A stretch of 64,000 nt of DNA from Macrostomum lignano (taxonomy: Eukaryota). A model generated the notes under the pieces. That model made no database searches and was not told the DNA's origin. It was given only the letters and a program-made list of their open reading frames with translations. Made by a program: the position numbers and the translations under genes. Every line of letters begins with the position of its first letter. The stretch's first letter is position 1. The stretch is taken from the NCBI GenBank assembly GCA_002269645.1, contig NIVC01000717.1, forward strand, positions 1 to 64,000, read 5' to 3'. Below, one piece after another: positions 14,245 to 60,017 of this stretch.

Positions 14245-14316
14245 AAGCCTGTAATCAAGCTTTAACTAATCAAGTTTACTAACTTTGTTCAAAACAACCG
14301 TACATACTCATTTCAG

Positions 14317-15163
14317 TTCTCACACCAGAAGACGAGTTGCAGCAGCAACAGCCGCAGCCGCCACAGCAACAGCTTCATCGTCTTCTGCTTCCGGCGACGC
14401 TGCTTCAGCTGGTTCTGCTTCTTCAGCAACTGTGCCAAACCCAAATGGACCTGCACGTGTACCGTACCGCCTGCCGCAGCACCAGCAGTTGAACAATCCG
14501 ATGGCTCCTGTTGCTGCTCAGCGGCAGATTCTGCATCCGACCCGACCCGAAGGCCGCCAGCAGCCGCCGCCGCCGCCGCCGCCGCCCCCTCCGCCACGTC
14601 AGCAGGCTGCACCGATGAGCTTCCAGCAGACAGCGGCCAGCATGGCTTACCAGCATCAGCACCATCTGACTGGAGCAGCCAGCTCAGTTTACCACCTGCC
14701 ATTCCCTGCTCACCAGCATCATCACCAGTTCTACCAGCCTCCAACCTGCTACCTACCCGGAACTCATCATCAGCAACAGCAGCATCAGCATCCGCATCCG
14801 CATCATCACTCGGTGGCCGCTGCTGCCGCTGCCGCCGCCGCTGCAGCAGCTGCTTACTGCCCGCCATACTGCTGCCTTCACCATCAGCAACAGCATCAAC
14901 AACAGCATCAGCAGCAGCCACCGCCGCCGCCACCTCCGCCAGCCCCCTACCCTGGATTCCTACTGCACTTCCTAGCCATGCTTGATCATCAACAGCAGCA
15001 ACAGCAGCAGCAACAGCAACAGCAACAGCAGCAACAACAGCAACAGCAACAGCACACTGCTCGCAGCCATCACCCGCAGCAACAAGCGTCATTTTACATG
15101 CCTCATCATCATCAGCAGCAGCAGCAACAGCAGCGTCAACCGCAGCAGCCGCAGCCTCATCAT

Positions 15164-15197
<34 letters not shown>

Positions 15198-15499
15198 GAG
15201 CCTCCGCTACAAACAATATGGACAGCCTGCTCCATCTGGCTGCTCAAATTGGCGACAACAACAAGCCCAGAGGCATGCACCGCTCCGAGCTTGACAGCTT
15301 GCCAACTTACCGCTTCGTTGCCCCTGGCAACCAGTCCAGCTGCGTTGTGTGCATGTGCGACTTTGAGCCTCGCCAGCAGTTGCGCTCGCTGGCCTGCGGT
15401 CACGAGTTCCATGTCCGATGCGTGGACCGCTGGCTGCGGCACAATCGCACCTGTCCGGTGTGCCGCGCGGACGCAGCTAAAGGCCATCAGTCTGCCTGA
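14317..15499 (+). CDS. RNF38: Terminal exon of RNF38/RNF44-like RING-H2 E3 ubiquitin ligase
   Basis: CVVCMCDFEPRQQLRSLACGHEFHVRCVDRWLRHNRTCPVCRADA and NMDSLLHLAAQIGDNNKPRGMHRSELDSLPTYRF match the RNF38/44 C-terminus. TTTCAG acceptor at 14311-14316; AATAAA at ~16115. Confidence 0.9.
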
Positions 15500-22335: not shown

Positions 22336-25300
22336 ATGCAGGATCAAAGATCAACAAGAGGACTACTCCTAGCGGCCTTGTTTCTGCTGACAATATTCTC
22401 AAACGAAGTGAGTTGTAAGCAGCCAAAGCTCTATCCGCAACCAAACTACGAAACTAAGGAGTACTGGACCAGGTGAGTCGTTTTGCAGTTCCTTCTAGCC
22501 CCAAATGAATATGGCCGAGCACGGCGTCTACATGTGGATGGTGTCCAGATGTCGCGCATATTCTTGAGTCTCCCCTCGTCCCCAGGGATGCCCAGCAGTC
22601 CATGGACCGGGCCTCGCGGGTGCTGCAGCAGCTGCGCTACTCCGCCAAGAACGTCATTCTGTTTATCGGCGACGGCATGGGCGTCAGCACGGTGACAGCC
22701 GGCCGGATTCTCAAAGGCCAGCTCAAGAACTCGTCGGGCGAAGAGGCGTCGCTTGCGTTTGACGAGTTCGATCATGCAGGACTGATCAGGACGTACAACA
22801 TGGACAGGCAGACACCCGACAGTGCGTCCACTGCGACCGCCTTCATGTGCGGTGTGAAGACAAACGGCTACATGCTTGGGGTGAACCAGGATGCAAAGCT
22901 GGGCAGCTGTTCGACTTACGATAGCCGACAGCACGACGTGGTGTCGTTTCTGAAGTTCGCCTCCGAGCAGGTGAGCGTCCAGAGCGGTATTCTTGTAGGG
23001 TTTTTGGGATGATTGTTGTAGGGTTGTTGGGATGATTGCTGTAGGGCTGTTGGGGTGATTGTTGTAGGGTTGTTGGGATGATTGTTGTAGGGTTGTTGGG
23101 ATGATTGTTGTAGGGTTGTTGGGATGATTGTTGTAGGGTTGTTGGGATGATTGCTGTAGGGCTGTTGGGGTGATTGTTGTAGGGTTGTTGGGGTGATTGT
23201 TGTAGGGTTTTTGGGGTGATTGTTGTAGGGCTGTTGGGGGTGACTGTTGTAGGGTTGCTGGGGTGATTGTTGTAGGGCTGTTGGGGTGATTTTTCTGGGT
23301 AATTCTAGCTGGATAGCTCTCTTTCTCTCCCTAATCTCCTCTTCAGGGCAAGGCCACTGGTGTGCTCACCACGGACCGCCTGACGGGCGCAACACCAGCC
23401 CCAGCCTACGCCAGCTCCGTCAGCCGCCAGTGGCAGGACGACACCGACCGAAACACGGACGACTCGAGCCCGGACTCGCCTGAGCAGCGACGCCGTTGCC
23501 CCGACATCGCCACCCAGCTGGTCGATCGGGCCGTCAATTTCACCGTCCTAATGGGCGGCGGTCGGCTCAAACTGCTGCCAAAAAATGTCACCACAATGGA
23601 CCAGTTTGGCGGTGTTCAGGTGAACGGCACACGCTCCGACGGCATCAATCTGGTGGAGCGCTGGAGCAGCTTGCAGCGGCAGCTCGGCCGGCGCCCAGTC
23701 TACGTGGAAACAGCCGACGAGCTGAGAAATCTTCGTGCAGATCAAGCTGACTCAGTTCTGGGTCTCCTATCAACCGAGAAGATGCGGTATCACTCGACAA
23801 ATATTCGTTCTGAGGGTTACCGTGAGCCCAGCTTAGCCGATATGACTCGGAAAGCTCTGGAAGTTCTGCGCAAGAATTCCAACGGTTTCGCTCTGATGGT
23901 TGAGGGCGCCCGAATCGACAGCGGTCACCATGCCAACCAGGCCCAGCGGGCTCTCTACGATGTCCTAGCATTCGACGAAGCTGTCCAAGTGGCTACTGAG
24001 ATGACTAGCATTGAGGACACCCTGATAGTTGTGTCTGCAGATCATAGTCACGTTTTCACTATCGGTCACTATGGTTACAGAGGCCAGCCTATTCTTGGAA
24101 AGATGGTTAGCAAGAGTAGCGACGGCTCGCTGCAGTACGAAGTGGCTCCCGACAACATTGAGAAGACCGTGGCCAGCTACAGCGATGGGCCGAGCGCCAA
24201 GCCGAATCAGCCGCGACCGAACATCACTGAGGATGTGCCTGAGGAGAAGGAAAAATACAGGTGACTGCCTTGGATGCAAAGTGGTAGAGAGGCGCCAAAA
24301 CAGACACAGAGAGAGGCGCCAAATCAGACACAGAGAGGCGCCAAAACAGACACAGAGAGAGGCGCCAAAACAGACACAGAGAGAGGCGCCAAAACAGACA
24401 CAGGGAGAGGCGCCAAATCAGACACAGAGAGAGGCGCCAAAACAGACACAGGGAGAGGCGCCAAATCAGACACAGAGAGAGGCGCCAAATCAGACACAGA
24501 GAGAGGCGCCAAATCAGACACAGAGAGAGGCGCCAAATCAGACACAGAGAGAGGCGCCAAATCAGACACAGAGAGAGGCGCCAAATCAGACACAGAGAGA
24601 GGCGCCAAATCAGACACAGAGAGAGGCGCCAAAACTGACTCGAGAGAGGCGCCAAAACAGACACAGAGAGAGGCGCCAAATCAGACACAGAGAGAGGCGC
24701 CAAAATTGACTCAGAGAGAGGCGCTAAAACAGACACAGAAAGAGGCGCCAAAACTGACACAGGGAGAGGCGCCAAAACAGACACAGAGAGAGGCGCCAAA
24801 ACAGACACAGAGAGAGGCGCCAAAACTGACACAGGGCCGGAGAGGTGCCAAAACTGACTCGAGAGAGGCGCCAAATCAGACACAGAGAGAGGCGCCAAAA
24901 CAGACACAGAGAGAGAGGCGCCAAAACAGACACAGAGAGAGGCGCCAAAACAGACAGAGAGAGGCGCTAAAACAGGCGCAGAGAAGGCGTCTAATCCAGG
25001 CATACTTACGACAGAAATATCTACACGGATCAAGCGGCTCTCACAAAGTGCTATCTTACTAAAACAAAAATTCCCTACCCTTTAATATTCCCAGATACCC
25101 AGCCCTGGTGCCGCGCCATTCCGAGTCGCATTCAGCCGAAGACGTGGCGCTATTCGCTCGGGGCCCGGGCGCCCACCTGTTCCAAAGCGTGCACCAGCAG
25201 TCCTACATTGGTCACGTGATCATGAAGGCCGGCTGTCTCGGCTGGTATGCTCGGACTGGAAATTGTCTGCAAGACCCCGAGTCTGCCACCAGTGCGGCAA

Positions 25301-27180: not shown

Positions 27181-32415
<5,235 letters not shown>

Positions 32416-36171: not shown

Positions 36172-36329
36172 TATCGTTTGAAACGTAGGTGTGACTTTGA
36201 CTTACTTGACTTAGCTGCAGGGCTGTCCCGGAGGGGACACAGCGGGAAGGCGCGGGCGCCCATTCCGCTAATCCCTGAACGGCCGACGCGTCGCTATGGA
36301 CGGAGGGTTGGCGCCGCCCAGGGAGGTCC

Positions 36330-39300
36330 CCAGTGTCGCCAGCAGCTATAGTGCTCTCAGGAAAGGAGAGTTCAGCCCTGCGGGTGGCCCGAAGGTAGCG
36401 CATGAGCTGATTAAAGTTTTCGGGTTTGCACGCTTCAGTAATAGATGTGTGTGGCCCGAGGTAAGTGAGTCTGGCCCGCGTGAAGGCGGGACAGATGCTG
36501 ACGAAATGCTCAGCGGTTTCGTCACCTGAGTTGCAGAAACTACAGGTGGCGTTGGTGGCGTTGCCCTGCAGGTACTGGTGCCTGGAGAAGCAGCCGTGAC
36601 CAGAGAGGGTCATGGTGGCAGCCCGGATGTCTCTGCGCGAGAGGCGCAAGAGGAGCTTCCGGAGCTGGTGAGAGGGCTGAGGGACAGCGCCTCTGGATTG
36701 CCTGCAGTTCGTGCGGTTCGCCCAAGTCGAGCGGTGCTGAGTCCTGATCCACGCTTGATGCGCGAGTCGATGACACAGCCAGGAATCGGGACAAGAGGTT
36801 CGGGGCCGAGAGAGGAGCCGGAGGCACCAACTTTTGCAAGGGTGTCAGCCAGCTCATTTCCTCGGATCCCCACATGCCCGGAACCCACTTAAGGGTAATT
36901 TTGTTGGCGGAACCCAACACTTGAGAAGTTTGATACAGTCGAGGACTGTAGCAGAGTTGGTGCTGCAGCCACTGATGGCGTGCAAGGCAGCTTGGCTGTC
37001 CGAATGGAAAATGATGTTCTTGCCAATAACGCCAGTGGCGAGAAGCTCTGCAGTGCAGGAGCTGATGGCCAGAACTTCATTTTGGAAAACACTGGAGTTG
37101 ACCCCAGTGTATTGAGCGTGGGTAGCGATGACCCTCCCGTTCAGAAAGATTCCAACACCAAAGCCGGTGTTGGCTGACTGCTTAGAACCGTCGGTGTAGC
37201 AATGAAGCTCACCAGGGTTCCATTGGTCATTGATGTTATCGCGCGAGTCGATAGCTACGGAGTAGCGCTGTCTCAGGTTGAGCGTTGAGGCAATGCCATC
37301 GGTGAAGACGCGATTGGCCTGACACTCGTTGAGAAAGTTGAGGCACAGGTCGCTATGCGGGACAAGGTTCCGCTTAGCAGGTGCTCTCATGTAAATGAAT
37401 TTGACGCCGGCATCAATTAGACGCCGCGTCGTTCTAGCCGCCTCACCCCTGACGAAGAGGTCAAGAGGCGGTAGATTAAGGAAGGCCCCCATGCCAGCAA
37501 AGGGCGTGGACCTGGTGGCGTTGCAGATGAGCCTACACGCTCTGCCTTGGATCGTGTTGAGCAGGTCTGCATGGCTTTTGACCTGGGTAGCGCTAACCCA
37601 GACAACAGAGGCGTACGTAATGGCAGGTCTAACTACGGAAGTATAGATCCACCAAAGCCGCTTTGGGGATAGACCCCAAGAAGTGCCAAGTGCTCGTCGG
37701 AGCTGGGCCAGGATGGCTGAGGCACGCTTGGCTTTTGCTTTCACGTGGAAGGACCAGTTGAGCCGGTGGTCAAGTGTGACCCCGAGACATCTGGTCTGGT
37801 GCGCGAAGGCAATATCTCTGCCGTAGAGCTGCAGAGGACGTATGTTCCAGCGTAGTCTGCTGGTAAACATAATGGCAACGGTTTTGGGCTCAGAGAGTTC
37901 CAGACCATTGTCATTGGCCCAGGATTCTGCTTTGCGGATAAAGCTCTGCATCAGATCCCTGAGCGTGCTGGGAGACGGTCCTGCCACAATGGCCGTGACG
38001 TCATCAGCATACCCGACTTTGAAGACGGGGTCGGGTCGGGAGTCACTCAAAAGAGCGTCCATGACCAGGTTCCAGAGCGTCGGGGTGAGGACTCCGCCTT
38101 GGGGTCCACCCTTACAGACTCTGGTGGAGGCAGTTTGCCCAAGAAGTTGGGCAGTGACCGTACGGTTGGAGATCATGTACATGATCCACCGTATGAGGGT
38201 AGCATGAGCTTTGCGATTTTGAAGGGCCCTCTGAAACGCTTCAAAGATAACGTTGTCGAAGGCGCCAACAATGTCAAGAAAGAGAGCCAGGGCGTAACCG
38301 TCACCCAGTACCGCCCGTTCAATCTTCTCGACAATCGCATGCAGGGCGCTGTCAGTCGACCTCCCGGTACGGAAGGCGTGCTGATTATTGCTGAGGGGCA
38401 TCGCTGTCAGCTCGCAGGACAGCAGCCGCCAGAGAATAAGCCTCTCAGTGAGCTTAAGCATTGCTGACGTTAAGCTAATAGGCCGAAGGCCTTGACGCTT
38501 TGGTAGTCACCCTTCCCAGGTTTGGGAATAAAGACTACCCGAGCTTCAGTCCAGCATTTGGGAACGTATCCCAGCTGGATAGAGGCCCGCATAAGATTGC
38601 GGGTGAGTCTCAGGAACGAGGGTATCTTGGCTGCTTCACGAAGGAGAACAGGGTAGATACCATCAGGTCCAGGAGATTTGAAGGGTTTGAAGGTTCTGAC
38701 CGCACGAGCGATTAGGTCTTCAGTGACAATGCCCGCCGCTAGGGTGGCTCCATCCATCGAATGGTTGGGCTCCGGTCTAGCAGTAGGTACCCTCGGGAAG
38801 AATGTGCTAAGCATATGCTGAAGCACTTCTTCAGGGTCTTTAGTAAGAGAGCCATCATCTTTTTTGATCATGGCTAATTTGGACATTTTGTCCATTGTAA
38901 GGGCCTTGACAAGCCTAGAAGTAGGTCTGTCTTGATCCAATTCATTGCAGAATTGGCGCCACTTACATTCCTTGGCCTTGCGCACTTCAGATTTGAAATT
39001 GCGGGAGGCTTGCCGGAAAAGCTCCATGTCCTCCGGGTTTCCGGTCTTCATGGCACGGCGATGAAGGCTTTTGGCCTTCCGCCTGAGTTTCCCCAGCTCC
39101 GGGTTCCACCACGGCGCCGAGGTCTTGCCTTTGTAGGCGCGAGCAGGACAAGCCGCTTCGTAGGCTGCAATAATGCAACCTGTCAGCGTCTCAGCCATAT
39201 GATCCACATCCTCGCAGGTCTCAATCGGACGTAAGTCCGTGAGTTCCTGCAGGTGCAGATCAAGGGCAGCCTTGTAGGCCGCCCAATCAGTGTTGCGGAT

Positions 39301-40026
39301 ATTGCGCTCCAAGTGATCGGAGACTGGGTTTTAGTGTCCGCGATGTTAAAGGCGATAAAGCAGTGGTCAGACAGGGAGGGCTCCTCAGACCAGACTCTCC
39401 ACTCCTCAACTCTGTCAAAGAGTCTTGGGGTAACGAGTGTGGCGTCGAGGACCTCGGTCCATCTGCCATTATTAAAGGTAGGAGTGCTGCCGCGGTTGCA
39501 GAGCATGAGGTTTGTGTTAGAGATGAGGGCCAGAAGCTCCTCTCCTCTAGTGTTGGTATCTTTGCTGCCCCAGTGCTTGTGATGCGCGTTGAGGTCGACC
39601 CCTAAGCACAACTCAGCGTTCTGGGACTCGCAGTACTGCGCAAGGCGCAGTAAACTCTCAGGAGCAGGGTCTCTGTCACCTGGGATATAAACCGAGGCAA
39701 CAAGACACGTACGCGGAGAGAAATGATTAGATTGGATGACGCAAAGGTCTCCATCAGAGAGATCAGTCCTCAGCCAAGCCTGGAGATGGCTAGCAGCGAG
39801 GATAGCCGCTCTAGGGCGGCTGTTCCCCGGGCCACACACAAAAATCAGAGTAGCCAGAGGGAATGTTGGGCAACTTACCGTTGCGCATCCAGGGTTCCTG
39901 GATCAGGATGAGGCCTGGCCTGTACAGCTCAGCAATCTTCATCAGATTTACTGACGCAGATACGCAATGCTGTAAATTAATTTGCAGACAGAATGTCGCT
40001 CCTTTGGCAGCGTGGAGCTTAGTCAT
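36330..40026 (-). CDS. LINE ORF2 (apurinic endonuclease, reverse transcriptase, RNase H, C-terminal CCHC), split by at least six frameshifts in this sequence
   Basis: EN: QINLQH, LIQEPW, GVDLNAHH.WGS, SDH. RT: KSPGPDGI, QHAFR.GRST, LDIVGAFD, GPQGGVLTP, GYADD, LGVTLD. RNase H: YTDGSK, DSQAAL, WVPGHVGIRGNELAD. Zn finger: CSFC...ETAEHFVSIC. Confidence 0.9.
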
Positions 40027-40059
40027 ACTGTATTAAATGCAATGTCTGGCTAGAGCCCA

Positions 40060-41619
40060 GGGCCATCAAGGAGACTTGGACAACAGATCGTCCTCGTCCC
40101 AGGCCGCTGGGGCTTGACTGGGAGATGGGAGTTGGTCGACGTCCATGGCCTCCTCACCCCCACCGGCCCCCCAGCAGAGTCCTCAGGCTCCGATGACAGG
40201 ATGGAGGAAGCTTCCTCATCTGCATCTTTACCTTCAGACCCCACCAGGGTGGCCGAGGAGAGCTCGGATTCCGAAGACCCGGCCTCGTCCTCAACTCCTT
40301 CTCCGACTAGCAGGTTTGGTTCCCGGGGCTTGGCCGGAGCCGTTACCGCGGTCGCCGAACTGCTGCTAGCAGAGGGGCGAGACGCAGCTTTGGCTTTGGG
40401 ATCGGCTTGCGCCTTTCCTTGGGCCTTAGACTGCGCCCCGCTCTTGCCGGAGATGCCGGGGTTGGCAGTAGCCTTCCTTTGGCAGACTTTCCTCGGCGCA
40501 TCTTGAGCTTGAGGGCACCCAGCTGGAAAGAGGATCCATTAGGGTACCGACTCGCCCAAGTGCTGGAAAGGCCGAGGACAATTGAGTTGCCCGTCTCCCC
40601 CCTGCGGACTCGGCGGTGAACACCAGTCCACTAGCAGGGAGGTCGGGGTTCAGACGCAGTAGGACCCGGCGGATAACGTCTGGTCCAGCTGCGGTGCTCC
40701 TAGCAGGGACAAAGACCTGATAGGGTATTGTCTTTGGACGCTGGCCCTCGCGAAGAAAAAGAGCTCCGCCAAGGTCAGCATCCAAGGAGACCGTCGGTAG
40801 CCGCTTGAGCCGAGCGTCCTCCTCGCTGCTAGGAGCAATAAGAACGAATGTGCTTCGCAGCACCATCCGCTCAACGCCGATGGAGATTCCCTCCTCGACA
40901 GTCAGCCCAATCAGATAGGAGTCAACAGCACTCCACACTTTTTGAAGCTGATCAGTGGTCCAGTCCTGGTCGCGACCTTGGATGATCACTCCCGGGATTT
41001 TGGCCTTGACCTTCGCCGCAAAGGTAGCTCCCGAAGGAACCTCCTTGTTGGCAGTGGCCATTTGTTGCGCCGTGGTTTCGGCCTCAGCAGCCGCGGCAGC
41101 ATCTCCAGGGAGCGCCGCCGCTGAACTACTGGAGCTTCCACCGGCCGGCCCGCCTGGTTGCCTTGGGACTCCAGTCGCTTCAGCATCCATGGTGGACGCC
41201 GCCGCTTTGGCCCCCGCAGCTCCCTGCTTGGCCTGCCTTTTGGTGCGTTGTTTAGCGCGTTTGCGCTCAAGCCGAGCCCGCTGAGCTTCATCGGATCTGC
41301 CAGATTTGGCCGGTCCTTTAGGCTCAGAGCTCGCGGTTCCCTTAGATCCACCAGCGGAGCTGGCAGGTCTTTGGGCATTTTGAGTTTGGTAGCTCTGGTC
41401 GGATCTGCCAGCAGAGCCAGCCGGTCCTTCCTTTGCCACAGTTGAATCAGTCGGTTGGGATCTGCCAGCAGGGCCGGCCGGTCCTTCGGACTGAGGTTGG
41501 GGTTTAGAAGGGTCCCCGTCCCTAGAAAAAGCTTGGTTATCCATAGTCGGCTCGAAGGCCATGATAAAAGGTTGGTGGGCTACCCTCAAAGGGGCGCGGT
41601 ACCCACCCGGCCGCTCCAC
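40060..41619 (-). CDS. LINE ORF1 (low-complexity N-terminus, basic region), with frameshifts
   Basis: Long ORF upstream of ORF2 inside the TSD-bounded element. No clear zinc knuckle seen; the end coordinate is approximate. Confidence 0.65.
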
Positions 41620-41837
41620 CTGACCGGGCAGTAGGCCAATAGAACCCTCAAGGCTGGCCCGACACCAGGAGGGGGACCGCTTGCGACCGGACTACTCCCC
41701 GGCCTTCCAGCCCATCGGCACGGTCAACACCTTAGGCATTAGAGAGTACGTTGAGTAGTACCACGGCCTGCAGGTTGGCGAGCCAGACCCGCATACCCAA
41801 ATTCGGCCGAAGCCACTGGATAGGGTCGCCAGCGCCG

Positions 41838-42078
41838 GAGCCCAGTCTGTCCAGCAGCCCTCGGGTCTGCCTTGAACACACGCGGGGACGAGTACCCTGG
41901 GTCGACTTGCGAGACAGCGTGGGGGGGTCTGCGGCTGCCAGAGGCAAATAGAGGGTGCAGACCTACCACCGGCCTTGACCTGCCAAAGATAGGGGCAAGC
42001 GTGAAGCATCGCAGACCGTAGCCCATAGGCCTAGTCTGTCTCATACTTCACTGGCGTGCTGAATACACCTTCGCGTGC
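41838..42078 (-). ncRNA. HDV-like (nested double pseudoknot) self-cleaving ribozyme at the LINE 5' end
   Basis: P1 GCACGCG (42078-42072) pairs with CGCGUGU (41884-41878), with a G1-U wobble. P3 GGG/CCC encloses L3 UACUCGU. P1.1 AC/GU. P4 GCAG-A-CC(CGAG)GG-CUGC. Catalytic C at 41849 in CAGAC. P2 GACCCA/UGGG(C)UC. J1/2 is 168 nt. Confidence 0.8.
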
Positions 42079-43280
42079 AACGTAGGTGTGAGTAAAGCGA
42101 ATTTATAAATTTTTGTCAATGAAACAAATGTAGCTGGTATAAATTCGATTGACTCACACCATTCATTTCAGTTAGGATGGAGGTGAATGGGGGGAACCCT
42201 CAAAAAGTGACAGGTGCAGCCATAAATCATCAAATTTCAATACATTTTTTATATGAGTTTTAGCAATGCTAAGTAAAAAATCAGCATGAAATCTCATAGA
42301 ATTCACTTCATGGAAATCTCATGTGACTTATCGCAAGCCAGCATACCAGATGGCCGATTAAAACCTTGACGTCTGATGATTTGGTGGTATGGAAAAGAAA
42401 AAAATCATGAAAGAGAGAGGAATATTAATATGAAAGACAAAGGGTATAAAAGAGGTAATAAAAAAAGAAGAAATGAAAGAATGGGAAAGATAGGGAAGAA
42501 TATAATCCCAACTGGCCATAGTGAGTACAGAACAGAGGAAAGAGCTCATGTGCCCTCATATCAGTGCGAGGGCTGTCCGAGTACTGGGTACTCAGAAGTC
42601 CCAGGTCGTTTCCCCTTGACTCATCAAATGATTCATCCCACCTCATCACTGCTTGTTCACCTTCGCGTTACGTCCTCAGGCTCTCAGGCGTGACGTCCGT
42701 TTTAAACCTCGTATCTCCCCAAGCTATTTTGCTTCCGTCACGTGACCTATTGCGCAACCCTAGGATTTTATAGGTCGTCTACGCACATGACGTCACTTGG
42801 CTGCCAAACGACGCCATTCAAGGAATGGTCAAGGCCACTTTGTTCTCATATCATGCCTGTGATTTTTTATTAAAGACAGTGGCTGTGTGCACCCTGGCGC
42901 ACTTTAAGCGACATTGTCACACAACCGGCGAGAGGCATTGCTGCCCATTCCACCGACTCCCCTGAGCAGGCACACAAGCGCAAGGATACGTACGCAGTCA
43001 TACGCACAGGCACACACTCACACAGGAGTTTACAGCGGCCCTAACTTTACTTTATTTATCGTCAGGCATGTACACTGTGCCTTGGAGGTTGGCCTTTCAA
43101 GGGCATTACAAGCAGATCCAAGCTGAGATTGGCAACGAAGTTTTGGTTGGTTATTCCCGCAGCCAATCGCTTTGTCATGAAAGAATTTTCATAAATCAAT
43201 AAATAATGAAGATTGCTTCTGAGCCCTAGGTTTCCACAGCTACCAGAGACAGAAGCAGTTGCCCAAATCCAGCCTCCAGC

Positions 43281-47520: not shown

Positions 47521-50500
47521 TATGGCACATTATGTTACTTATGGCACATTATGGCACATTATGTTATTTATGGCACACTATGGCACACTATGTTACTTAT
47601 GGCACACTATGTTACTTATGGCACACTATGGCACACTATGGCACATTATGTTACTTATGGCACATTATGTTACTTATGGCACACTATGGCACACTATGGC
47701 ACATTATGTTACTTATGGCACATTATGTTACTTATGGCACATTATGTTACTTATGGCACATTATGGCACATTATGGCACACTATGGCACATTATGTTACT
47801 TATGGCACATTATGTTACTTATGGCACACTATGGCACACTATGTTACTTATGGCACACTATAGCACACTATGGCCCATTATGTTACTTATGGCACATTAT
47901 GGCACATTATGTTACTTATGGCACATTATGTTACTTATGGCACACTATGGCACACTATGGCACATTATGTTACTTATGGCACATTATGTTACTTATGGCA
48001 CATTATGTTACTTATGGCACATTATGTTACTGCACATTGTGTTACTTATGGCACATTATGTTACTTATGGCACACTATGGCACACTATGTTACTTATGGC
48101 ACACTATGGCACACTATGGCACATTATGTTACTTATGGCACATTATGGCACACTATGGCACATTATGTTACTTATGGAACATTATGGCACATTATGGCAC
48201 ACTATGGCACATTATGTTACTTATGGCACACTATGGCACACTATGGCACATTATGTTACTTATGGCACACTATGGCACACTATGGCACATTATGTTAATT
48301 ATGGCACATTATGGCACACTATGGCACATTATGTTACTTATGGCACACTATGGCACACTATGGCACATTATGTTACTTATGGCACATTATGGCACATTAT
48401 GGCACATTATGGCACACTATGGCACACTATGTTACTTATGGCACACTATGGCACACTATGGCACATTATGTTACTTATGGCACATTATGGCACACTATGG
48501 CACATTATGTTACTTATGGAACATTATGGCACATTATGGCACACTATGGCACATTATGTTACTTATGGCACACTATGGCACACTATGGCACATTATGTTA
48601 ATTATGGCACATTATGGCACACTATGGCACATTATGTTACTTATGGCACACTATGGCACACTATGGCACATTATGTTACTTATGGCACATTATGGCACAT
48701 TATGGCACATTATGGCACACTATGGCACATTATGTTACTTATGGCACATTATGGCACACTATGGCACATTATGTTACTTATGGCACATTATGGCACATTA
48801 TGGCACACTATGGCACATTATGTTACTTATGGCACACTATGGCACACTATGGCACATTATGTTACTTATGGCACACTATGGCACATTATGGCACACTATG
48901 GCACATTATGTTACTTATGGCACACTATGGCACACTATGGCACATTATGTTACTTATGGCACATTATGGCACACTATGGCACATTATGTTACTTATGGCA
49001 CATTATGGCACATTATGGCACACTATGGCATATTATGTTACTTATGGCTCACTATGGCACACTATGGCACATTATGTTACTTATGGCACACTATGGCACA
49101 CTATGGCACATTATGTTACTTATGGCACACTATGGCACACTATGGCACATTGTGTTACTTATGGCACATTATGTTACTTATGGCACACTATGGCACACTA
49201 TGTTACTTATGGCACACTATGGCACACTATGTTACTTATGGCACACTATGGCACACTATGGCACATTATGTTACTTATGGCACACTATGGCACACTATGG
49301 CACATTATGTTACTTATGGCACATTATGGCACACTATGGCACATTATGTTACTTATGGCACATTATGGCACATTATGGCACACTATGGCATATTATGTTA
49401 CTTATGGCTCACTATGGCACACTATGGCACATTATGTTACTTATGGCACACTATGGCACACTATGGCACATTATGTTACTTATGGCACACTATGGCACAT
49501 TATGGCACACTATGGCACATTATGTTACTTATGGCACACTATGGCACACTATGGCACATTATGTTACTTATGGCACACTATGGCACACTATGGCACATTA
49601 TGTTACTTATGTCACATTATGGCACACTATGGCACATTATGTTACTTATGGCACATTATGGCACATTATGGCACACTATGGCACATTATGTTACTTATGG
49701 CACACTATGGCACACTATGGCACATTATGTTACTTATGGCACACTATGGCACACTATGGCACATTATGTTACTTATGGCACATTATGGCACACTATGGCA
49801 CATTATGTTACTTATGGCACATTATGGCACATTATGGCACACTATGGCATATTATGTTACTTATGGCTCACTATGGCACACTATGGCACATTATGTTACT
49901 TATGGCACACTATGGCACACTATGGCACATTATGTTACTTATGGCACACTATGGCACACTATGGCACATTGTGTTACTTCTGGCACATTATGTTACTTAT
50001 GGCACACTATGGCACACTATGTTACTTATGGCACACTATGGCACACTATGTTACTTATGGCACACTATGGCACACTATGGCACACTATGTTACTTATGGC
50101 ACACTATGGCACACTATGTTACTTATGGCACACTATGGCACACTATGGCACATTATGTTACTTATGGCACACTATGGCACACTAAGGCACATTATGTTAC
50201 TTATGGCACACTATGGCACACTATAGCACATTGTGTTACTTATGGCACATTATGTTACTTATGGCACACTATGGCACACTATGTTACTTATGGCACACTA
50301 TGGCACACTATGGCACATTATGTTACTTATGGCACATTATGGCACACTATGGCACATTATGTTACTTATGGAACATTATGGCACATTATGGCACACTATG
50401 GCACATTATGTTACTTATGGCACACTATGGCACACTATGGCACATTATGTTACTTATGGCACACTATGGCACACTATGGCACATTATGTTAATTATGGCA

Positions 50501-53500
50501 CATTATGGCACACTATGGCACATTATGTTACTTATGGCACACTATGGCACACTATGGCACATTATGTTACTTATGGCACATTATGGCACACTATGGCACA
50601 TTATGTTACTTATGGCACACTATGGCACACTATGGCACACTATCGCACTCTGGCACACTATGGCACACTTTGGCACACTATGGCACATTATGTTACTTAT
50701 GGCACATTATGGCACACTATGGCACATTATGTTACTTATGGCACATTATGGCACATTATGGCACACTATGGCACATTATGTTACTTATGGCACACTATGG
50801 CACACTATGGCACATTATGTTACTTATGGCACACTATGGCACATTATGGCACACTATGGCACATTATGTTACTTATGGCACACTATGGCACACTATGGCA
50901 CATTATGTTACTTATGGCACATTATGGCACACTATGGCACATTATGTTACTTATGGCACATTATGGCACATTATGGCACACTATGGCATATTATGTTACT
51001 TATGGCTCACTATGGCACACTATGGCACATTATGTTACTTATGGCACACTATGGCACACTATGGCACATTATGTTACTTATGGCACACTATGGCACACTA
51101 TGGCACATTGTGTTACTTATGGCACATTATGTTACTTATGGCACACTATGGCACACTATGTTACTTATGGCACACTATGGCACACTATGTTACTTATGGC
51201 ACACTATGGCACACTATGGCACATTATGTTACTTATGGCACACTATGGCACACTATGGCACATTATGTTACTTATGGCACATTATGGCACACTATGGCAC
51301 ATTATGTTACTTATGGCACATTATGGCACATTATGGCACACTATGGCATATTATGTTACTTATGGCTCACTATGGCACACTATGGCACATTATGTTACTT
51401 ATGGCACACTATGGCACACTATGGCACATTATGTTACTTATGGCACACTATGGCACATTATGGCACACTATGGCACAATATGTTACTTATGGCACACTAT
51501 GGCACACTATGGCACATTATGTTACTTATGGCACACTATGGCACACTATGGCACATTATGTTACTTATGTCACATTATGGCACACTATGGCACATTATGT
51601 TACTTATGGCACATTATGGCACATTATGGCACACTATGGCACATTATGTTACTTATGGCACACTATGGCACACTATGGCACATTATGTTACTTATGGCAC
51701 ACTATGGCACACTATGGCACATTATGTTACTTATGGCACATTATGGCACACTATGGCACATTATGTTACTTATGGCACATTATGGCACATTATGGCACAC
51801 TATGGCATATTATGTTACTTATGGCTCACTATGGCACACTATGGCACATTATGTTACTTATGGCACACTATGGCACACTATGGCACATTATGTTACTTAT
51901 GGCACACTATGGCACACTATGGCACATTGTGTTACTTCTGGCACATTATGTTACTTATGGCACACTATGGCACACTATGTTACTTATGGCACACTATGGC
52001 ACACTATGTTACTTATGGCACACTATGGCACACTATGGCACACTATGTTACTTATGGCACACTATGGCACACTATGTTACTTATGGCACACTATGGCACA
52101 CTATGGCACATTATGTTACTTATGGCACACTATGGCACACTAAGGCACATTATGTTACTTATGGCACACTATGGCACACTATAGCACATTGTGTTACTTA
52201 TGGCACATTATGTTACTTATGGCACACTATAGCACACTATGTTACTTATGGCACACTATGGCACACTATGGCACATTGTGTTACTTATGGCACATTATGT
52301 TACTTATGGCACACTATGGCACACTATGTTACTTATGGCACACTATGGCACACTATGGCACATTATGTTACTTATGGCACATTATGGCACACTATGGCAC
52401 ATTATGTTACTTATGGCACATAATGGCACATTATGGCACACTATGGCACATTATGTTACTTATGGCACACTATGGCACACTATGGCACATTATGTTACTT
52501 ATGGCACACTATGGCACACTATGGCACATAATGTTACTTATGGCACATTATGGCACACTATGGCACATTATGTTACTTATGGCACATTATGGCACATTAT
52601 GGCACATTATGGCACACTATGGCACATTATGTTACTTATGGCACATTATGGCACATTATGGCACATTATGGCACACTATGGCACATTATGTTACTTATGG
52701 CACATTATGGCACACTATGGCACATTATGTTACTTATGGCACACTATGGCACACTATGGCACACTATGGCACACTAAGGCACACTATGGCACACTATGGC
52801 ACACTATGGCACACTATGGCACACTATGACACACTATGGCACACTATGGCACACTATGGCACAATATGGCACAATATGGCACACTATGGCACACTATGGC
52901 ATACATGTACACTATGGCACACTATGGCACACTATGGCATACACTATGGCACAACTAGGGCACACTATGGCATAGTATGGCACAACTAGGGCACACTATG
53001 GCATACACTATGGCACACTATGGCACACTATGGCATACTATGGCACAACTAGGGCACACTATGGCATACTATGGCACAACTAGGGCACACTATGGCATAC
53101 ACTATGGCACACTATGGCACACTATGGCATACACTATGGCACAACTAGGGCACACTATGGCATACACTATGGCATACTATAGCACACTATGGCATACACT
53201 ATGGCACATTATGGCACATTATGGCACACTATGGCACATTATGTTACTTATGGCACATTATGGCACAATATGGCACATTATGGCACACTATGGCACATTA
53301 TGTTACTTATGGCACACTATGGCACACTATGGCACATTGTGTTACTTATGGCACATTATGTTACTTATGGCACACTATGGCACACTATGTTACTTATGGC
53401 ACACTATGGCACACTATGGCACATTATGTTACTTATGGCACACTATGGCACACTAAGGCACATTATGTTACTTATGGCACACTATGGCACACTATAGCAC

Positions 53501-56500
53501 ATTGTGTTACTTATGGCACATTATGTTACTTATGGCACACTATGGCACACTATGGCACATTGTGTTACTTATGGCACATTATGTTACTTATGGCACACTA
53601 TGGCACACTATGTTACTTATGGCACACTATGGCACACTATGGCACATTATGTTACTTATGGCACATTATGGCACATTATGGCACACTATGGCACATTATG
53701 TTACTTATGGCACACTATGGCACACTATGGCACATTATGTTACTTATGGCACACTATGGCACACTATGGCACATTATGTTACTTATGGCACATTATGGCA
53801 CACTATGGCACATTATGTTACTTATGGCACATTATGGCACATTATGGCACACTATGGCATATTATGTTACTTATGGCTCACTATGGCACACTATGGCACA
53901 TTATGTTACTTATGGCACACTATGGCACACTATGGCACATTATGTTACTTATGGCACACTATGGCACACTATGGCACATTGTGTTACTTATGGCACATTA
54001 TGTTACTTATGGCACACTATGGCACACTATGTTACTTATGGCACACTATGGCACACTATGTTACTTATGGCACACTATGGCACACTATGGCACATTATGT
54101 TACTTATGGCACACTATGGCACACTAAGGCACATTATGTTACTTATGGCACACTATGGCACACTATAGCACATTGTGTTACTTATGGCACATTATGTTAC
54201 TTATGGCACACTATGGCACACTATGTTACTTATGGCACACTATGGCACACTATGGCACATTGTGTTACTTATGGCACATTATGTTACTTATGGCACACTA
54301 TGGCACACTATGTTACTTATGGCACACTATGGCACACTATGGCACATTATGTTACTTATGGCACATTATGGCACACTATGGCACATTATGTTACTTATGG
54401 CACATTATGGCACATTATGGCACACTATGGCACATTATGTTACTTATGGCACACTATGGCACACTATGGCACATTATGTTACTTATGGCACACTATGGCA
54501 CACTATGGCACATTATGTTACTTATGGCACATTATGGCACACTATGGCACATTATGTTACTTATGGCACATTATGGCACATTATGGCACATTATGGCACA
54601 CTATGGCACATTATGTTACTTATGGCACATTATGGCACATTATGGCACATTATGGCACACTATGGCACATTATGTTACTTATGGCACATTATGGCACACT
54701 ATGGCACATTATGTTACTTATGGCACACTATGGCACACTATGGCACACTATGGCACACTAAGGCACACTATGGCACACTATGGCACACTATGGCACACTA
54801 TGGCACACTATGACACACTATGGCACACTATGGCACACTATGGCACAATATGGCACAATATGGCACACTATGGCACACTATGGCATACATGTACACTATG
54901 GCACACTATGGCACACTATGGCATACACTATGGCACACTATGGCACACTATGGCATACTATGGCACAACTAGGGCACACTATGGCATAGTATGGCACAAC
55001 TAGGGCACACTATGGCATACACTATGGCACACTATGGCACACTATGGCATACTATGGCACAACTAGGGCACACTATGGCATACTATGGCACAACTAGGGC
55101 ACACTATGGCATACACTATGGCACATTATGGCACATTATGGCACACTATGGCACATTATGTTACTTATGGCACATTATGGCACAATATGGCACATTATGG
55201 CACACTATGGCACATTATGTTACTTATGGCACACTATGGCACACTATGGCACATTGTGTTACTTATGGCACATTATGTTACTTATGGCACACTATGGCAC
55301 ACTATGTTACTTATGGCACACTATGGCACACTATGGCACATTATGTTACTTATGGCACACTATGGCACACTAAGGCACATTATGTTACTTATGGCACACT
55401 ATGGCACACTATAGCACATTGTGTTACTTATGGCACATTATGTTACTTATGGCACACTATGGCACACTATGGCACATTGTGTTACTTATGGCACATTATG
55501 TTACTTATGGCACACTATGGCACACTATGTTACTTATGGCACACTATGGCACACTATGGCACATTATGTTACTTATGGCACATTATGGCACATTATGGCA
55601 CACTATGGCACATTATGTTACTTATGGCACACTATGGCACACTATGGCACATTATGTTACTTATGGCACACTATGGCACACTATGGAACATTATGTTACT
55701 TATGGCACATTATGGCACACTATGGCACATTATGTTACTTATGGCACATTATGGCACATTATGGCACACTATGGCATATTATGTTACTTATGGCTCACTA
55801 TGGCACACTATGGCACATTATGTTACTTATGGCACACTATGGCACACTATGGCACATTATGTTACTTATGGCACACTATGGCACACTATGGCACATTGTG
55901 TTACTTATGGCACATTATGTTACTTATGGCACACTATGGCACACTATGTTACTTATGGCACACTATGGCACACTATGTTACTTATGGCACACTATGGCAC
56001 ACTATGGCACATTATGTTACTTATGGCACACTATGGCACACTAAGGCACATTATGTTACTTATGGCACACTATGGCACACTATAGCACATTGTGTTACTT
56101 ATGGCACATTATGTTACTTATGGCACACTATGGCACACTATGTTACTTATGGCACACTATGGCACACTATGGCACATTGTGTTACTTATGGCACATTATG
56201 TTACTTATGGCACACTATGGCACACTATGTTACTTATGGCACACTATGGCACACTATGGCACATTATGTTACTTATGGCACATTATGGCACACTATGGCA
56301 CATTATGTTACTTATGGCACATTATGGCACATTATGGCACACTATGGCACATTATGTTACTTATGGCACACTATGGCACACTATGGCACATTATGTTACT
56401 TATGGCACACTATGGCACACTATGGCACATTATGTTACTTATGGCACATTATGGCACACTATGGCACATTATGTTACTTATGGCACATTATGGCACATTA

Positions 56501-59500
56501 TGGCACATTATGGCACACTATGGCACATTATGTTACTTATGGCACATTATGGCACATTATGGCACATTATGGCACACTATGGCACATTATGTTACTTATG
56601 GCACATTATGGCACACTATGGCACATTATGTTACTTATGGCACACTATGGCACACTATGGCACACTATGGCACACTAAGGCACACTATGGCACACTATGG
56701 CACACTATGGCACACTATGGCACACTATGACACACTATGGCACACTATGGCACACTATGGCACAATATGGCACAATATGGCACACTATGGCACACTATGG
56801 CATACATGTACACTATGGCACACTATGGCACACTATGGCATACACTATGGCACACTATGGCACACTATGGCATACTATGGCACAACTAGGGCACACTATG
56901 GCATAGTATGGCACAACTAGGGCACACTATGGCATACACTATGGCACACTATGGCACACTATGGCATACTATGGCACAACTAGGGCACACTATGGCATAC
57001 TATGGCACAACTAGGGCACACTATGGCATACACTATGGCACACTATGGCACACTATGGCATACACTATGGCACACTATGGCATACTATGGCACACTATGG
57101 CATACTATGGCACAACTAGGGCACACTATGGCATACACTATGGCATACTATAGCACACTATGGCATACACTATGGCACATTATGGCACATTATGGCACAC
57201 TATGGCACATTATGTTACTTATGGCACATTATGGCACATTATGGCACACTATGGCACATTATGTTACTTATGGCACATTATGGCACATTATGGCACATTA
57301 TGGCACACTATGGCACATTATGTTACTTATGGCACACTATGGCACACTATGGCACATTGTGTTACTTATGGCACATTATGTTACTTATGGCACACTATGG
57401 CACACTATGTTACTTATGGCACACTATGGCACACTATGGCACATTATGTTACTTATGGCACACTATGGCACACTAAGGCACATTATGTTACTTATGGCAC
57501 ACTATGGCACACTATAGCACATTGTGTTACTTATGGCACATTATGTTACTTATGGCACACTATGGCACACTATGGCACATTGTGTTACTTATGGCACATT
57601 ATGTTACTTATGGCACACTATGGCACACTATGTTACTTATGGCACACTATGGCACACTATGGCACATTATGTTACTTATGGCACATTATGGCACATTATG
57701 GCACACTATGGCACATTATGTTACTTATGGCACACTATGGCACACTATGGCACATTATGTTACTTATGGCACACTATGGCACACTATGGCTCATTATGTT
57801 ACTTATGGCACATTATGGCACATTATGGCACACTATGGCACATTATGTTACTTATGGCACACTATGGCACACTATGGCACATTATGTTACTTATGGCACA
57901 TTATGGCACATTATGGCACATTATGGCACACTATGGCACATTATGTTACTTATGGCACATTATGGCACACTATGGCACATTATGTTACTTATGGCACACT
58001 ATGGCACACTATGGCACACTATGGCACACTAAGGCACACTATGGCACACTATGGCACACTATGGCACACTATGGCACACTATGACACACTATGGCACACT
58101 ATGGCACACTATGGCACAATATGGCACAATATGGCACACTATGGCACACTATGGCATACATGTACACTATGGCACACTATGGCACACTATGGCATACACT
58201 ATGGCACACTATGGCATACTATGGCACACTATGGCATACTATGGCACAACTAGGGCACACTATGGCATACACTATGGCATACTATAGCACACTATGGCAT
58301 ACACTATGGCACACTATGGCACACTATGGCACACTATGGCACAACTAGGGCACACTATGGCATACACTATGGCACACTATGGCACACTATGGCATACACT
58401 ATGGCACACTATGGCGTACTATGGCACAACTAGGGCACACTATGGCACAATATGGCACACTATGGCACACTATGGCACACTATGGCACACTATGGCATAA
58501 TATGGCACAATATGGCACACTATGGCACAATATGGCATACTATGGCACAACTATGGCACAACTATGGCATACTATGGCACAACTATGGCACAACTATGGC
58601 ACAATACGGCACAATATGGCACACTATGGCACAATATGGCATACTATGGCACAACTATGGCACAACTATGGCATACTATGGCACAACTATGGCACAACTA
58701 TGGCACAATACGGCACAATATGGCACACTATGGCATACTATGGCACACTATGGCACACTGGCACACTATGGCACACTATGGCATAATATGGCACAAAATG
58801 GCACACTATGGCACAATATGGCATACTTATGGCACAACTATGGCACAACTATGGCATACTATGGCACAACTATGGCATACTACGCACACTATGGCATACT
58901 ATGGCGTACTATGGCACAACTATGGCACACTAAGGCATAATATGCCACTATGTTACACTTATGGCACATTATGTTACACTTATGGCACATTATGTTACAC
59001 TTATGGCACATTATGTTACACTTATGGCACATTATGTTACACTTATGGCACATTATGTTACACTTATGGCACATTATGTTTCACTTATGGCACATTATGT
59101 TACACTTATGGCACATTATGTTTCACTTATGGCACATTATGTTACACTTATGGCACATTATGTTACACTTATGGCACACTAAGGCATAATATGCCACTAT
59201 GTTACACTTATGGCACATTATGTTACACTTATGGCACATTATGTTACACTTATGGCACATTATGTTACACTTATGGCACATTATGTTACACTTATGGCAC
59301 ATTATGTTACTTATGGCACACTATGGCACATTATGGCACAACTATGGCATACTATGGCACACTATGACCCAATATGGCACACTATGGCACAACTATGGCA
59401 TACTATGGCACACTATGACCCAATATGGCACACTATGGCACACTATGGCACACTATGACCCAATATGGCATACTATGGCACACTATGACCCAATATGGCA

Positions 59501-60017
59501 CACTATGGCACATTATGTTACACTTATGGCACACTAAGGCATAATATGCCACTATGTTACACTTATGGCACATTATGTTACACTTATGGCACATTATGTT
59601 ACACTTATGGCACATTATGTTACACTTATGGCACATTATGTTACACTTATGGCACATTATGTTACTTATGGCACACTATGGCACATTATGGCACAACTAT
59701 GGCATACTATGGCACACTATGACCCAATATGGCACACTATGGCACAACTATGGCATACTATGGCACACTATGACCCAATATGGCACACTATGGCACACTA
59801 TGGCACACTATGACCCAATATGGCATACTATGGCACACTATGACCCAATATGGCACAACTATGGCATACACTATGGCACACTATGGCACACTATGGCACA
59901 CTATGGCACACTATGGCATACTATCGCACACTATCGCACTCTGGCACACTATGGCACACTATGGCACACTATGGCATATTATCGCCCACTATCGCACTCT
60001 GGCACAATATGGCATAC
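47521..60017. repeat. ~12.5-kb satellite built from 10-bp TATGGCACAC/TATGGCACAT and 9-bp TATGTTACT words, with ~1.9-2.0-kb higher-order repeats
   Basis: Direct. Near-identical ORF translations recur at an offset of 1917 (53484/55401, 54155/56072). Confidence 0.97.

Follow-up and report, generated by a model that had tools for sequence, protein, structure and literature searches.

A predicted large HDV-like ribozyme at the first base of a non-LTR LINE in the flatworm Macrostomum lignano

Results

The LINE and its surroundings

The window analysed here is a stretch of 64,000 nucleotides of Macrostomum lignano DNA (assembly GCA_002269645.1, contig NIVC01000717.1, positions 1 to 64,000), and all positions given for it below are counted from its first base. 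Its minus strand carries a decayed full-length LINE of 5.9 kb, with G42078 as the first base and 36195 as the last (Table 1). The genes near this element are host genes, namely two fragments of alkaline-phosphatase paralogues on the plus strand, ~7 kb apart (23362-24264 and 30669-31565, Pfam E ~1e-64 each), and a RING-finger ORF at 14285-15499. On the other side of the LINE there is a 12.5-kb satellite array (47521-60014) made up of ~1,266 copies, with ~79% matches, of the 10-nt unit TATGGCACAT; the array has a higher-order period of 39 and contains long spurious ORFs in several frames.

Both ends of the LINE are fixed by a perfect 13-bp target site duplication (TSD), and the base that follows the duplication differs between the two sides (G42078 versus T36181). 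A short tandem replaces the poly(A) tail at the 3' end. One of the related elements described below, L002, terminates in a trinucleotide microsatellite, and this LINE group therefore has at least two members with simple-repeat tails. Directly upstream of the LINE is an imperfect inverted repeat (42085-42160) with 23-nt arms that are 91% complementary and 30 nt of spacing. Because the left arm of this repeat overlaps the TSD, the LINE must have inserted into an arm of a hairpin-forming element, which is possibly the end of a MITE. The same inverted repeat produces the sole weak Rfam matches near the 5' end of the LINE, which are miRNA-like.

ORF1 of the LINE has no Pfam domain. ORF2 has Pfam matches to Exo_endo_phos_2 (PF14529), PF03372 and RVT_1 (PF00078), and its layout comprises an AP-endonuclease, a reverse transcriptase (RT), an RNase H-like region, recognised by colinearity with relatives that bear PF00075, and a C-terminal CCHC motif. 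Judged by its sequence, with ORF1 upstream, an ORF2 of this AP endonuclease/RT/RNase H-like type, a TSD and no LTRs, the element is a non-LTR LINE, and we assign it to the AP endonuclease/RT/RNase H LINEs as a whole rather than to any one clade such as LOA, I or ingi. The best UniRef matches of its proteins (ORF1 and fragments of the RT) are to proteins of M. lignano at 79-93% identity. ORF2 is broken at four places, by frameshifts near 39835-39818, 39354-39330 and 38494-38485 and by a premature stop near 36856-36845, and this copy can therefore no longer serve as a coding element. No further copies of the LINE were found within the window.

Table 1. Features of the LINE and of the predicted ribozyme at its 5' end (window positions)
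Feature	Position	Strand	Basis or remark
Decayed full-length LINE	36195..42078	(-)	13-bp TSD flanks, Pfam domains, colinearity with L012, L001 and L002
TSD, 5' copy, TCACACCTACGTT	42079..42091	(-)	perfect 13-bp duplication
TSD, 3' copy, TCACACCTACGTT	36182..36194	(-)	perfect 13-bp duplication
3' terminal tandem, TAAGTCAAG then TAAGTCAAAG	36195..36213	(-)	replaces poly(A) tail
ORF1	40426..41619	(-)	first ATG near 41562
P1, 5' strand GCACGCG	42072..42078	(-)	descriptor match; predicted cut immediately 5' of G42078
J1/2 peripheral domain, 168 nt	41904..42071	(-)	folding prediction
P2, 5' strand GACCCA	41898..41903	(-)	descriptor
P3, GGG with CCC, enclosing L3	41897-41895 with 41887-41885	(-)	3 bp
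L3, UACUCGU	41888..41894	(-)	gives A41893 and C41892 to P1.1
P1, 3' strand CGCGUGU, then P1.1, 3' strand GU	41884-41878, then 41877-41876	(-)	
Option 1, P4, compact interrupted 9-bp hairpin	41850..41875	(-)	-9.1 kcal/mol
Option 1, J4/2 CAGAC, then P2, 3' strand UGGG	41849-41845, then 41844-41841	(-)	candidate catalytic C41849
Option 2, 3' half	41795..41864	(-)	excludes option 1; second descriptor solution

The ribozyme core

An earlier reading of this DNA from its letters alone (the sequence-only reading) had proposed that the 5' end of the LINE encodes an HDV-like ribozyme. We searched the window with a descriptor that was written for this analysis and is our own approximation of an HDV-type descriptor. 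It required a 7-bp P1 starting with G-U, a 3-bp P3, an L3 of 6-9 nt, two Watson-Crick pairs in P1.1, at least 4 bp in each of P4 and P2, C-N-R-A in J4/2 and a J1/2 of up to 250-300 nt. The predicted ribozyme occupies the first ~240-285 bases of the LINE on the minus strand, and its G1 falls at 42078. Two independent routes, the descriptor and the TSD, thus lead to the same first base for the element. Both the descriptor and a base-by-base reading find the strands in the order of a nested double pseudoknot (P1-P2-P3-L3-P3'-P1'-P1.1-P4-J4/2-P2'), and no core helix is broken in this copy.

Everything that the sequence-only reading had drawn was recovered. The 7-bp P1 with its G1-U wobble, the P3 GGG/CCC, the L3 UACUCGU, P4 and CAGAC all lie on the minus strand at the positions given for them, as does the J1/2 (42071-41904, indeed 168 nt), and the cut that it predicted coincides to the base with the TSD boundary, the descriptor G1 being 42078 and the 13-bp TSD ending at 42079. 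P2 had been drawn as GACCCA/UGGG; both strands are present, but pairing is limited to the 4 bp of CCCA/UGGG. P1.1 consists of A41893-U41876 and C41892-G41877, so the A-U pair claimed for it is real, but the description of this P1.1 as uncommon does not hold, as it is within the range of 1 or 2 bp seen in known members (PMC3185411). The seven base pairs of P1, closed by the wobble G42078-U41878, have a duplex energy of -10.4 kcal/mol. L3 is 7 nt long, with U at position 1 and the pattern C.CG.

The overall minimum free energy (MFE) of the region is unremarkable (z = -0.04). Forcing P1 and P3 on 42078-41780 gives -120.5 kcal/mol versus -122.7 kcal/mol for the unconstrained MFE, and because this costs just 2.2 kcal/mol, a figure that excludes any credit for the pseudoknot helices P2 and P1.1, the ribozyme fold is energetically competitive. 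Folded alone, J1/2 is predicted to form three hairpins, with the ends of the domain joined by a weak helix, CAGC/GCUG. Structured J1/2 domains have been described in large HDV-like ribozymes, and the closing helix agrees with the 'pinch' of their peripheral domains (PMC4908430). The sequence-only reading had pointed to long J1/2 inserts in R2 ribozymes, and the J1/2 loops of silkmoth R2 do measure 216-498 nt (PMC3774820).

Chance rates of the fold

In 842 kb of real DNA the background of the descriptor is ~2e-5 matches per position. On both strands of the window (128 kb) it returned three start sites besides 42078, of which 12962 and 12840 were judged to be chance matches from their AT-rich context and 14919 solely from its atypical L3. 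Unrelated LINE loci (714 kb) gave 16 matches, seven sense and nine antisense, with no strand bias. When the 379-nt 5' UTR was shuffled with dinucleotides preserved, a match at base 1 arose in 18 of 200,000 shuffles (9e-5), and in 2 of 200,000 (1e-5) if C.CG was also required in L3. The 17-nt core of P2, P3 and L3 has 18 chance occurrences in prokaryotic genomes, none of which has P1.1 together with P1 and J4/2-P2, and it has no matches in viral contigs.

Because the TSD fixed the boundary independently, the coincidence of fold and boundary is significant at ~1e-4 to 1e-5, and together with the completeness of the fold it supports the proposal that the LINE begins with an HDV-like ribozyme. A GC-rich 5' UTR could resemble a ribozyme by chance, given that the background of the descriptor is non-zero, with three further sites in this window, and that the 3' half of the fold carries little information. 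For any one prespecified base, however, the expected rate of a match is 2e-5 to 9e-5, and ~tenfold lower with the L3 motif, and we regard chance resemblance as extremely unlikely.

Two exclusive solutions for the 3' half

All solutions for the 3' half share the cut site, P1, P3, L3 and P1.1. P4, J4/2 and P2 can be drawn in two incompatible ways, both of which are returned by the descriptor. In option 1, P4 abuts both P1.1 and C41849, J4/2 fits C-N-R-A, and P2 (CCCA/UGGG, 4 bp) has an energy of -5.2 kcal/mol. In option 2, P4 is a long hairpin (41864-41807, -26.3 kcal/mol), J4/2 is CGAAUU with C41805 as the candidate catalytic base, and P2 is ACCCA/UGGGU, with its 3' strand at 41799-41795, five Watson-Crick pairs and an energy of -6.9 kcal/mol. 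The long hairpin sequesters the CAGAC-UGGG of option 1 and leaves a J1.1/4 of 11 nt. If more of the 3' context is included, the strands 41871-41862 and 41791-41781 can pair as a third, long-range helix that competes. P2 is short in either option. The combination of CNRA and UGGG occurs three times downstream, and the 3' half is for this reason low in information and ambiguous.

Option 1 is geometrically the more canonical, because its P4 is flush with P1.1 and C41849, and it is transcribed first and is complete ~45 nt earlier than option 2; option 2 is thermodynamically favoured. The sequence-only reading had named C41849 as the catalytic base. This cytosine does lie in the J4/2 CAGAC that follows P4, but it is not unique, as C41805 competes with it. 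On the predicted folds both are candidate catalytic cytosines, and C41805 is a serious alternative. A ribozyme with the same cut site that used C41805 (in CGAAUU), the hairpin 41864-41807 as P4 and ACCCA/UGGGU as P2 would gain the more stable helices (-26.3 versus -9.1 kcal/mol for P4, -6.9 versus -5.2 kcal/mol for P2) and a J4/2 that reads CGAA, the classical J4/2 sequence of HDV-type ribozymes. It would have to stack P1.1 and P4 coaxially across a J1.1/4 that, at 11 nt, is long for such stacking, and to form after the compact, flush P4 had been completed and in competition with the third helix. We give the use of C41805 a minor but appreciable probability.

The two exclusive halves might also act as a switch during transcription. 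C41849 and its compact P4 would be made first, and the much more stable downstream hairpin would then swallow CAGAC-UGGG and offer C41805 and CGAA, so that cleavage would occur in a short kinetic window and the RNA would later refold into another 5' UTR structure, which might serve, for example, protein binding or an IRES-like, cap-independent translation of ORF1. We consider such a switch quite improbable. If it were real, it would operate in LINEs of free-living flatworms, a lineage for which the use of HDV-like ribozymes is not yet known.

Rfam models and related elements

The sequence-only reading had named descriptor and Infernal searches as the means of checking the fold, and the two gave different answers. 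Our descriptor finds G1 at 42078, whereas Infernal with the Rfam models, which include HDV_ribozyme, CPEB3, drz-agam-1 and drz-agam-2-2, gave no ribozyme match at the gathering score over the whole window, at E<=10 over 41700-42200, or on the core alone. How much the Rfam result weighs can be judged from a related element, L012 (OFEL01000276.1). This is an intact metagenomic LINE with DUF4780 in its ORF1 and with endonuclease, RT and RNase H in the same order in its ORF2 as in the window LINE, and the two ORF2 proteins are colinear at 30-42% identity. At the apparent 5' end of L012, where an AT-rich flank turns GC-rich, there is a compact HDV-like ribozyme (1220-1352) with P1 GGUUGGC/GCCGACU, L3 CUCCACGAG, P1.1 GG and J4/2 CUAAGG. 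Its L3 contains CACG, and C.CG is thus common to the L3 of L012 and that of the window. From the same start base, this ribozyme scores 18.2 bits with the drz-agam-1 model (gathering score 37) and 13.7 bits with HDV_ribozyme (gathering score 50), and because these scores are below threshold it is probably unannotated.

Since the L012 ribozyme itself gets just 18.2 bits where 37 are needed, the negative Rfam result on the window LINE is weak evidence. The Rfam models are narrow and insensitive to divergent LINE ribozymes, and a 168-nt insert hampers detection further. Taken at the level of its predicted fold, L012 provides a positive control for the descriptor and shows that HDV-like ribozymes are indeed employed by LINEs with this layout. 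It was the only locus with a convincing ribozyme among 80 metagenome loci that were collected by their endonuclease domain and are mostly LINEs, at 31-46% identity. Sense and antisense matches balance at these loci, and the set gives no ground for calling the ribozyme general in this group.

Searches with the ORF1, RT and linker proteins found, besides UniRef proteins, relatives for which DNA is available, all at no more than 45% identity except P0005, which is 59% identical to the window LINE over the RT/RNase H region and lies on a 2.7-kb contig that is too short to reach the 5' end. Of the relatives with DNA, L001 and L002 come nearest, at 42-45% identity across the RT. No HDV-like fold was found in either by the strict descriptor or by Rfam, at 5' ends whose true positions are uncertain in both, and relaxed descriptors gave hundreds of matches, which were uninformative. 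A possible long-range pairing of the first bases of these two elements, examined by eye, is not conserved between them. L001 (78-330) and L002 (71-320) share a conserved 5' UTR that has covarying hairpins (UGCACG/CGUGUA in one versus UGCAUG/CAUGCA in the other, and AGUUGA/UCAACU versus GGCUGA/UCAGUC) and no recognisable ribozyme.

The 5' UTR of the window LINE might likewise be structured and yet not cleave, either as the relic of a mutated ribozyme or as an internal promoter, an IRES or a structure bound by the ORF1 protein, with the element's 5' end set by transcription initiation. The covarying hairpins of L001 and L002, which come without a recognisable HDV fold, and the negative Rfam result are compatible with this, and point mutations in the core would be plausible in a copy that has a premature stop as well as three frameshifts. 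In L1Tc, moreover, promoter and ribozyme share the same 77 nt (PMC3185411). All the core helices are nevertheless intact in the window copy, and a promoter or an IRES leaves unexplained why exactly the first 7 nt should pair beside an HDV-type P3/L3, P1.1 and CNRA (p ~1e-5). A non-cleaving 5' UTR therefore seems to us rather unlikely.

Discussion

On the modelled structure, we consider it probable that members of this LINE family begin with a genuine large HDV-like ribozyme that is predicted to cut at G1. HDV-like ribozymes are known at the 5' ends of R2, R4/Dong, baggins, RTE and L1Tc/ingi elements (PMC3774820, PMC6765202, PMC4035085), and for R2, RTE and L1Tc/ingi the literature agrees in this with the sequence-only reading. 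Our full-text literature search found no paper that ties M. lignano to an HDV-like 5'-end ribozyme.

Co-transcription and cleavage, which we infer, would proceed as follows. The LINE would be transcribed within a longer read-through transcript, in which its first 7 nt would pair with 41884-41878 as P1, and the double pseudoknot would arise as P1 nests with P3/L3, P1.1, P4 and P2. A cytosine of J4/2, either C41849 or C41805, would then catalyse the cut immediately 5' of G42078, and this would free an RNA that starts exactly at the first base of the element and carries a 5'-OH. Target-primed reverse transcription to the very end of this RNA would give a copy that starts at G1 between 13-bp TSD flanks, which is why full-length copies would begin at G1. 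The same model is established for R2, R4/Dong, baggins/RTE and L1Tc (PMC3774820, PMC6765202, PMC3185411, PMC4035085).

In R2 and R4/Dong (Eickbush and Eickbush; PMC3774820), as proposed here, a non-LTR element is freed from a co-transcript by the ribozyme at its 5' end, and the likeness extends to the same double-pseudoknot core, the possibility of a very long J1/2 and the L3/P3/P1.1 block as the conserved part. R2 and R4 differ in that they are site-specific, have one ORF and a restriction-like endonuclease, and reside in rDNA or repeats, whereas the window LINE lies at a dispersed site and has two ORFs, an RNase H-like region and an endonuclease of the AP type. Furthermore, many R2 ribozymes cut upstream within the 28S sequence, while the cut in the window LINE is predicted at the first base of the element itself.

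The ribozymes of drz-Agam-1 (RF01787) and of baggins/RTE (PMC6765202) belong to dispersed LINEs of insects, lie at the exact 5' end and do not need upstream sequence. L012, with its ORF2 laid out as in the window LINE, matches drz-agam-1 weakly. The window ribozyme has no match to RF01787 and departs from the drz-Agam-1 type in its J1/2 (168 nt versus ~10 nt), its P3 (GGG/CCC), its 7-nt L3 and the A-U identity of one P1.1 pair.

L1TcRz of ingi/L1Tc (PMC3185411, PMC4035085) also lies at the very start of its LINE, which has AP endonuclease, RT and RNase H. Its P1.1 is a single pair, and the P1.1 of the window ribozyme is likewise reduced. Sequence downstream of the L1Tc ribozyme can refold and attenuate it, and the hairpin that sequesters CAGAC-UGGG in the window could act alike. 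L1TcRz differs in being compact (77 nt), in doubling as the Pr77 promoter and in having a protist host, and it is without sequence similarity to the window ribozyme. Among flatworms, non-LTR elements of Schistosoma mansoni carry twister variants (PMC8501958), which are also self-cleaving ribozymes of a LINE for 5' processing but belong to another ribozyme class with another fold.

The window ribozyme is thus well supported as a fresh example of a 5'-end trick that is already known, and not as a new kind, and because HDV-like ribozymes had been found at the 5' ends of several LINE clades the general picture is unchanged. If it is active, HDV-like 5'-end processing would extend to a dispersed family of AP endonuclease/RT/RNase H-like LINEs in a free-living flatworm that serves as a regeneration model and whose genome is very rich in repeats. 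Work on structure and function would gain another natural HDV-like ribozyme that has a large J1/2 and an A-U pair within P1.1, and the ribozyme would serve as a precise marker of full-length copies. An active ribozyme would also mean that the LINE could spread without a promoter of its own, riding on the transcripts of its host or of neighbouring sequences.
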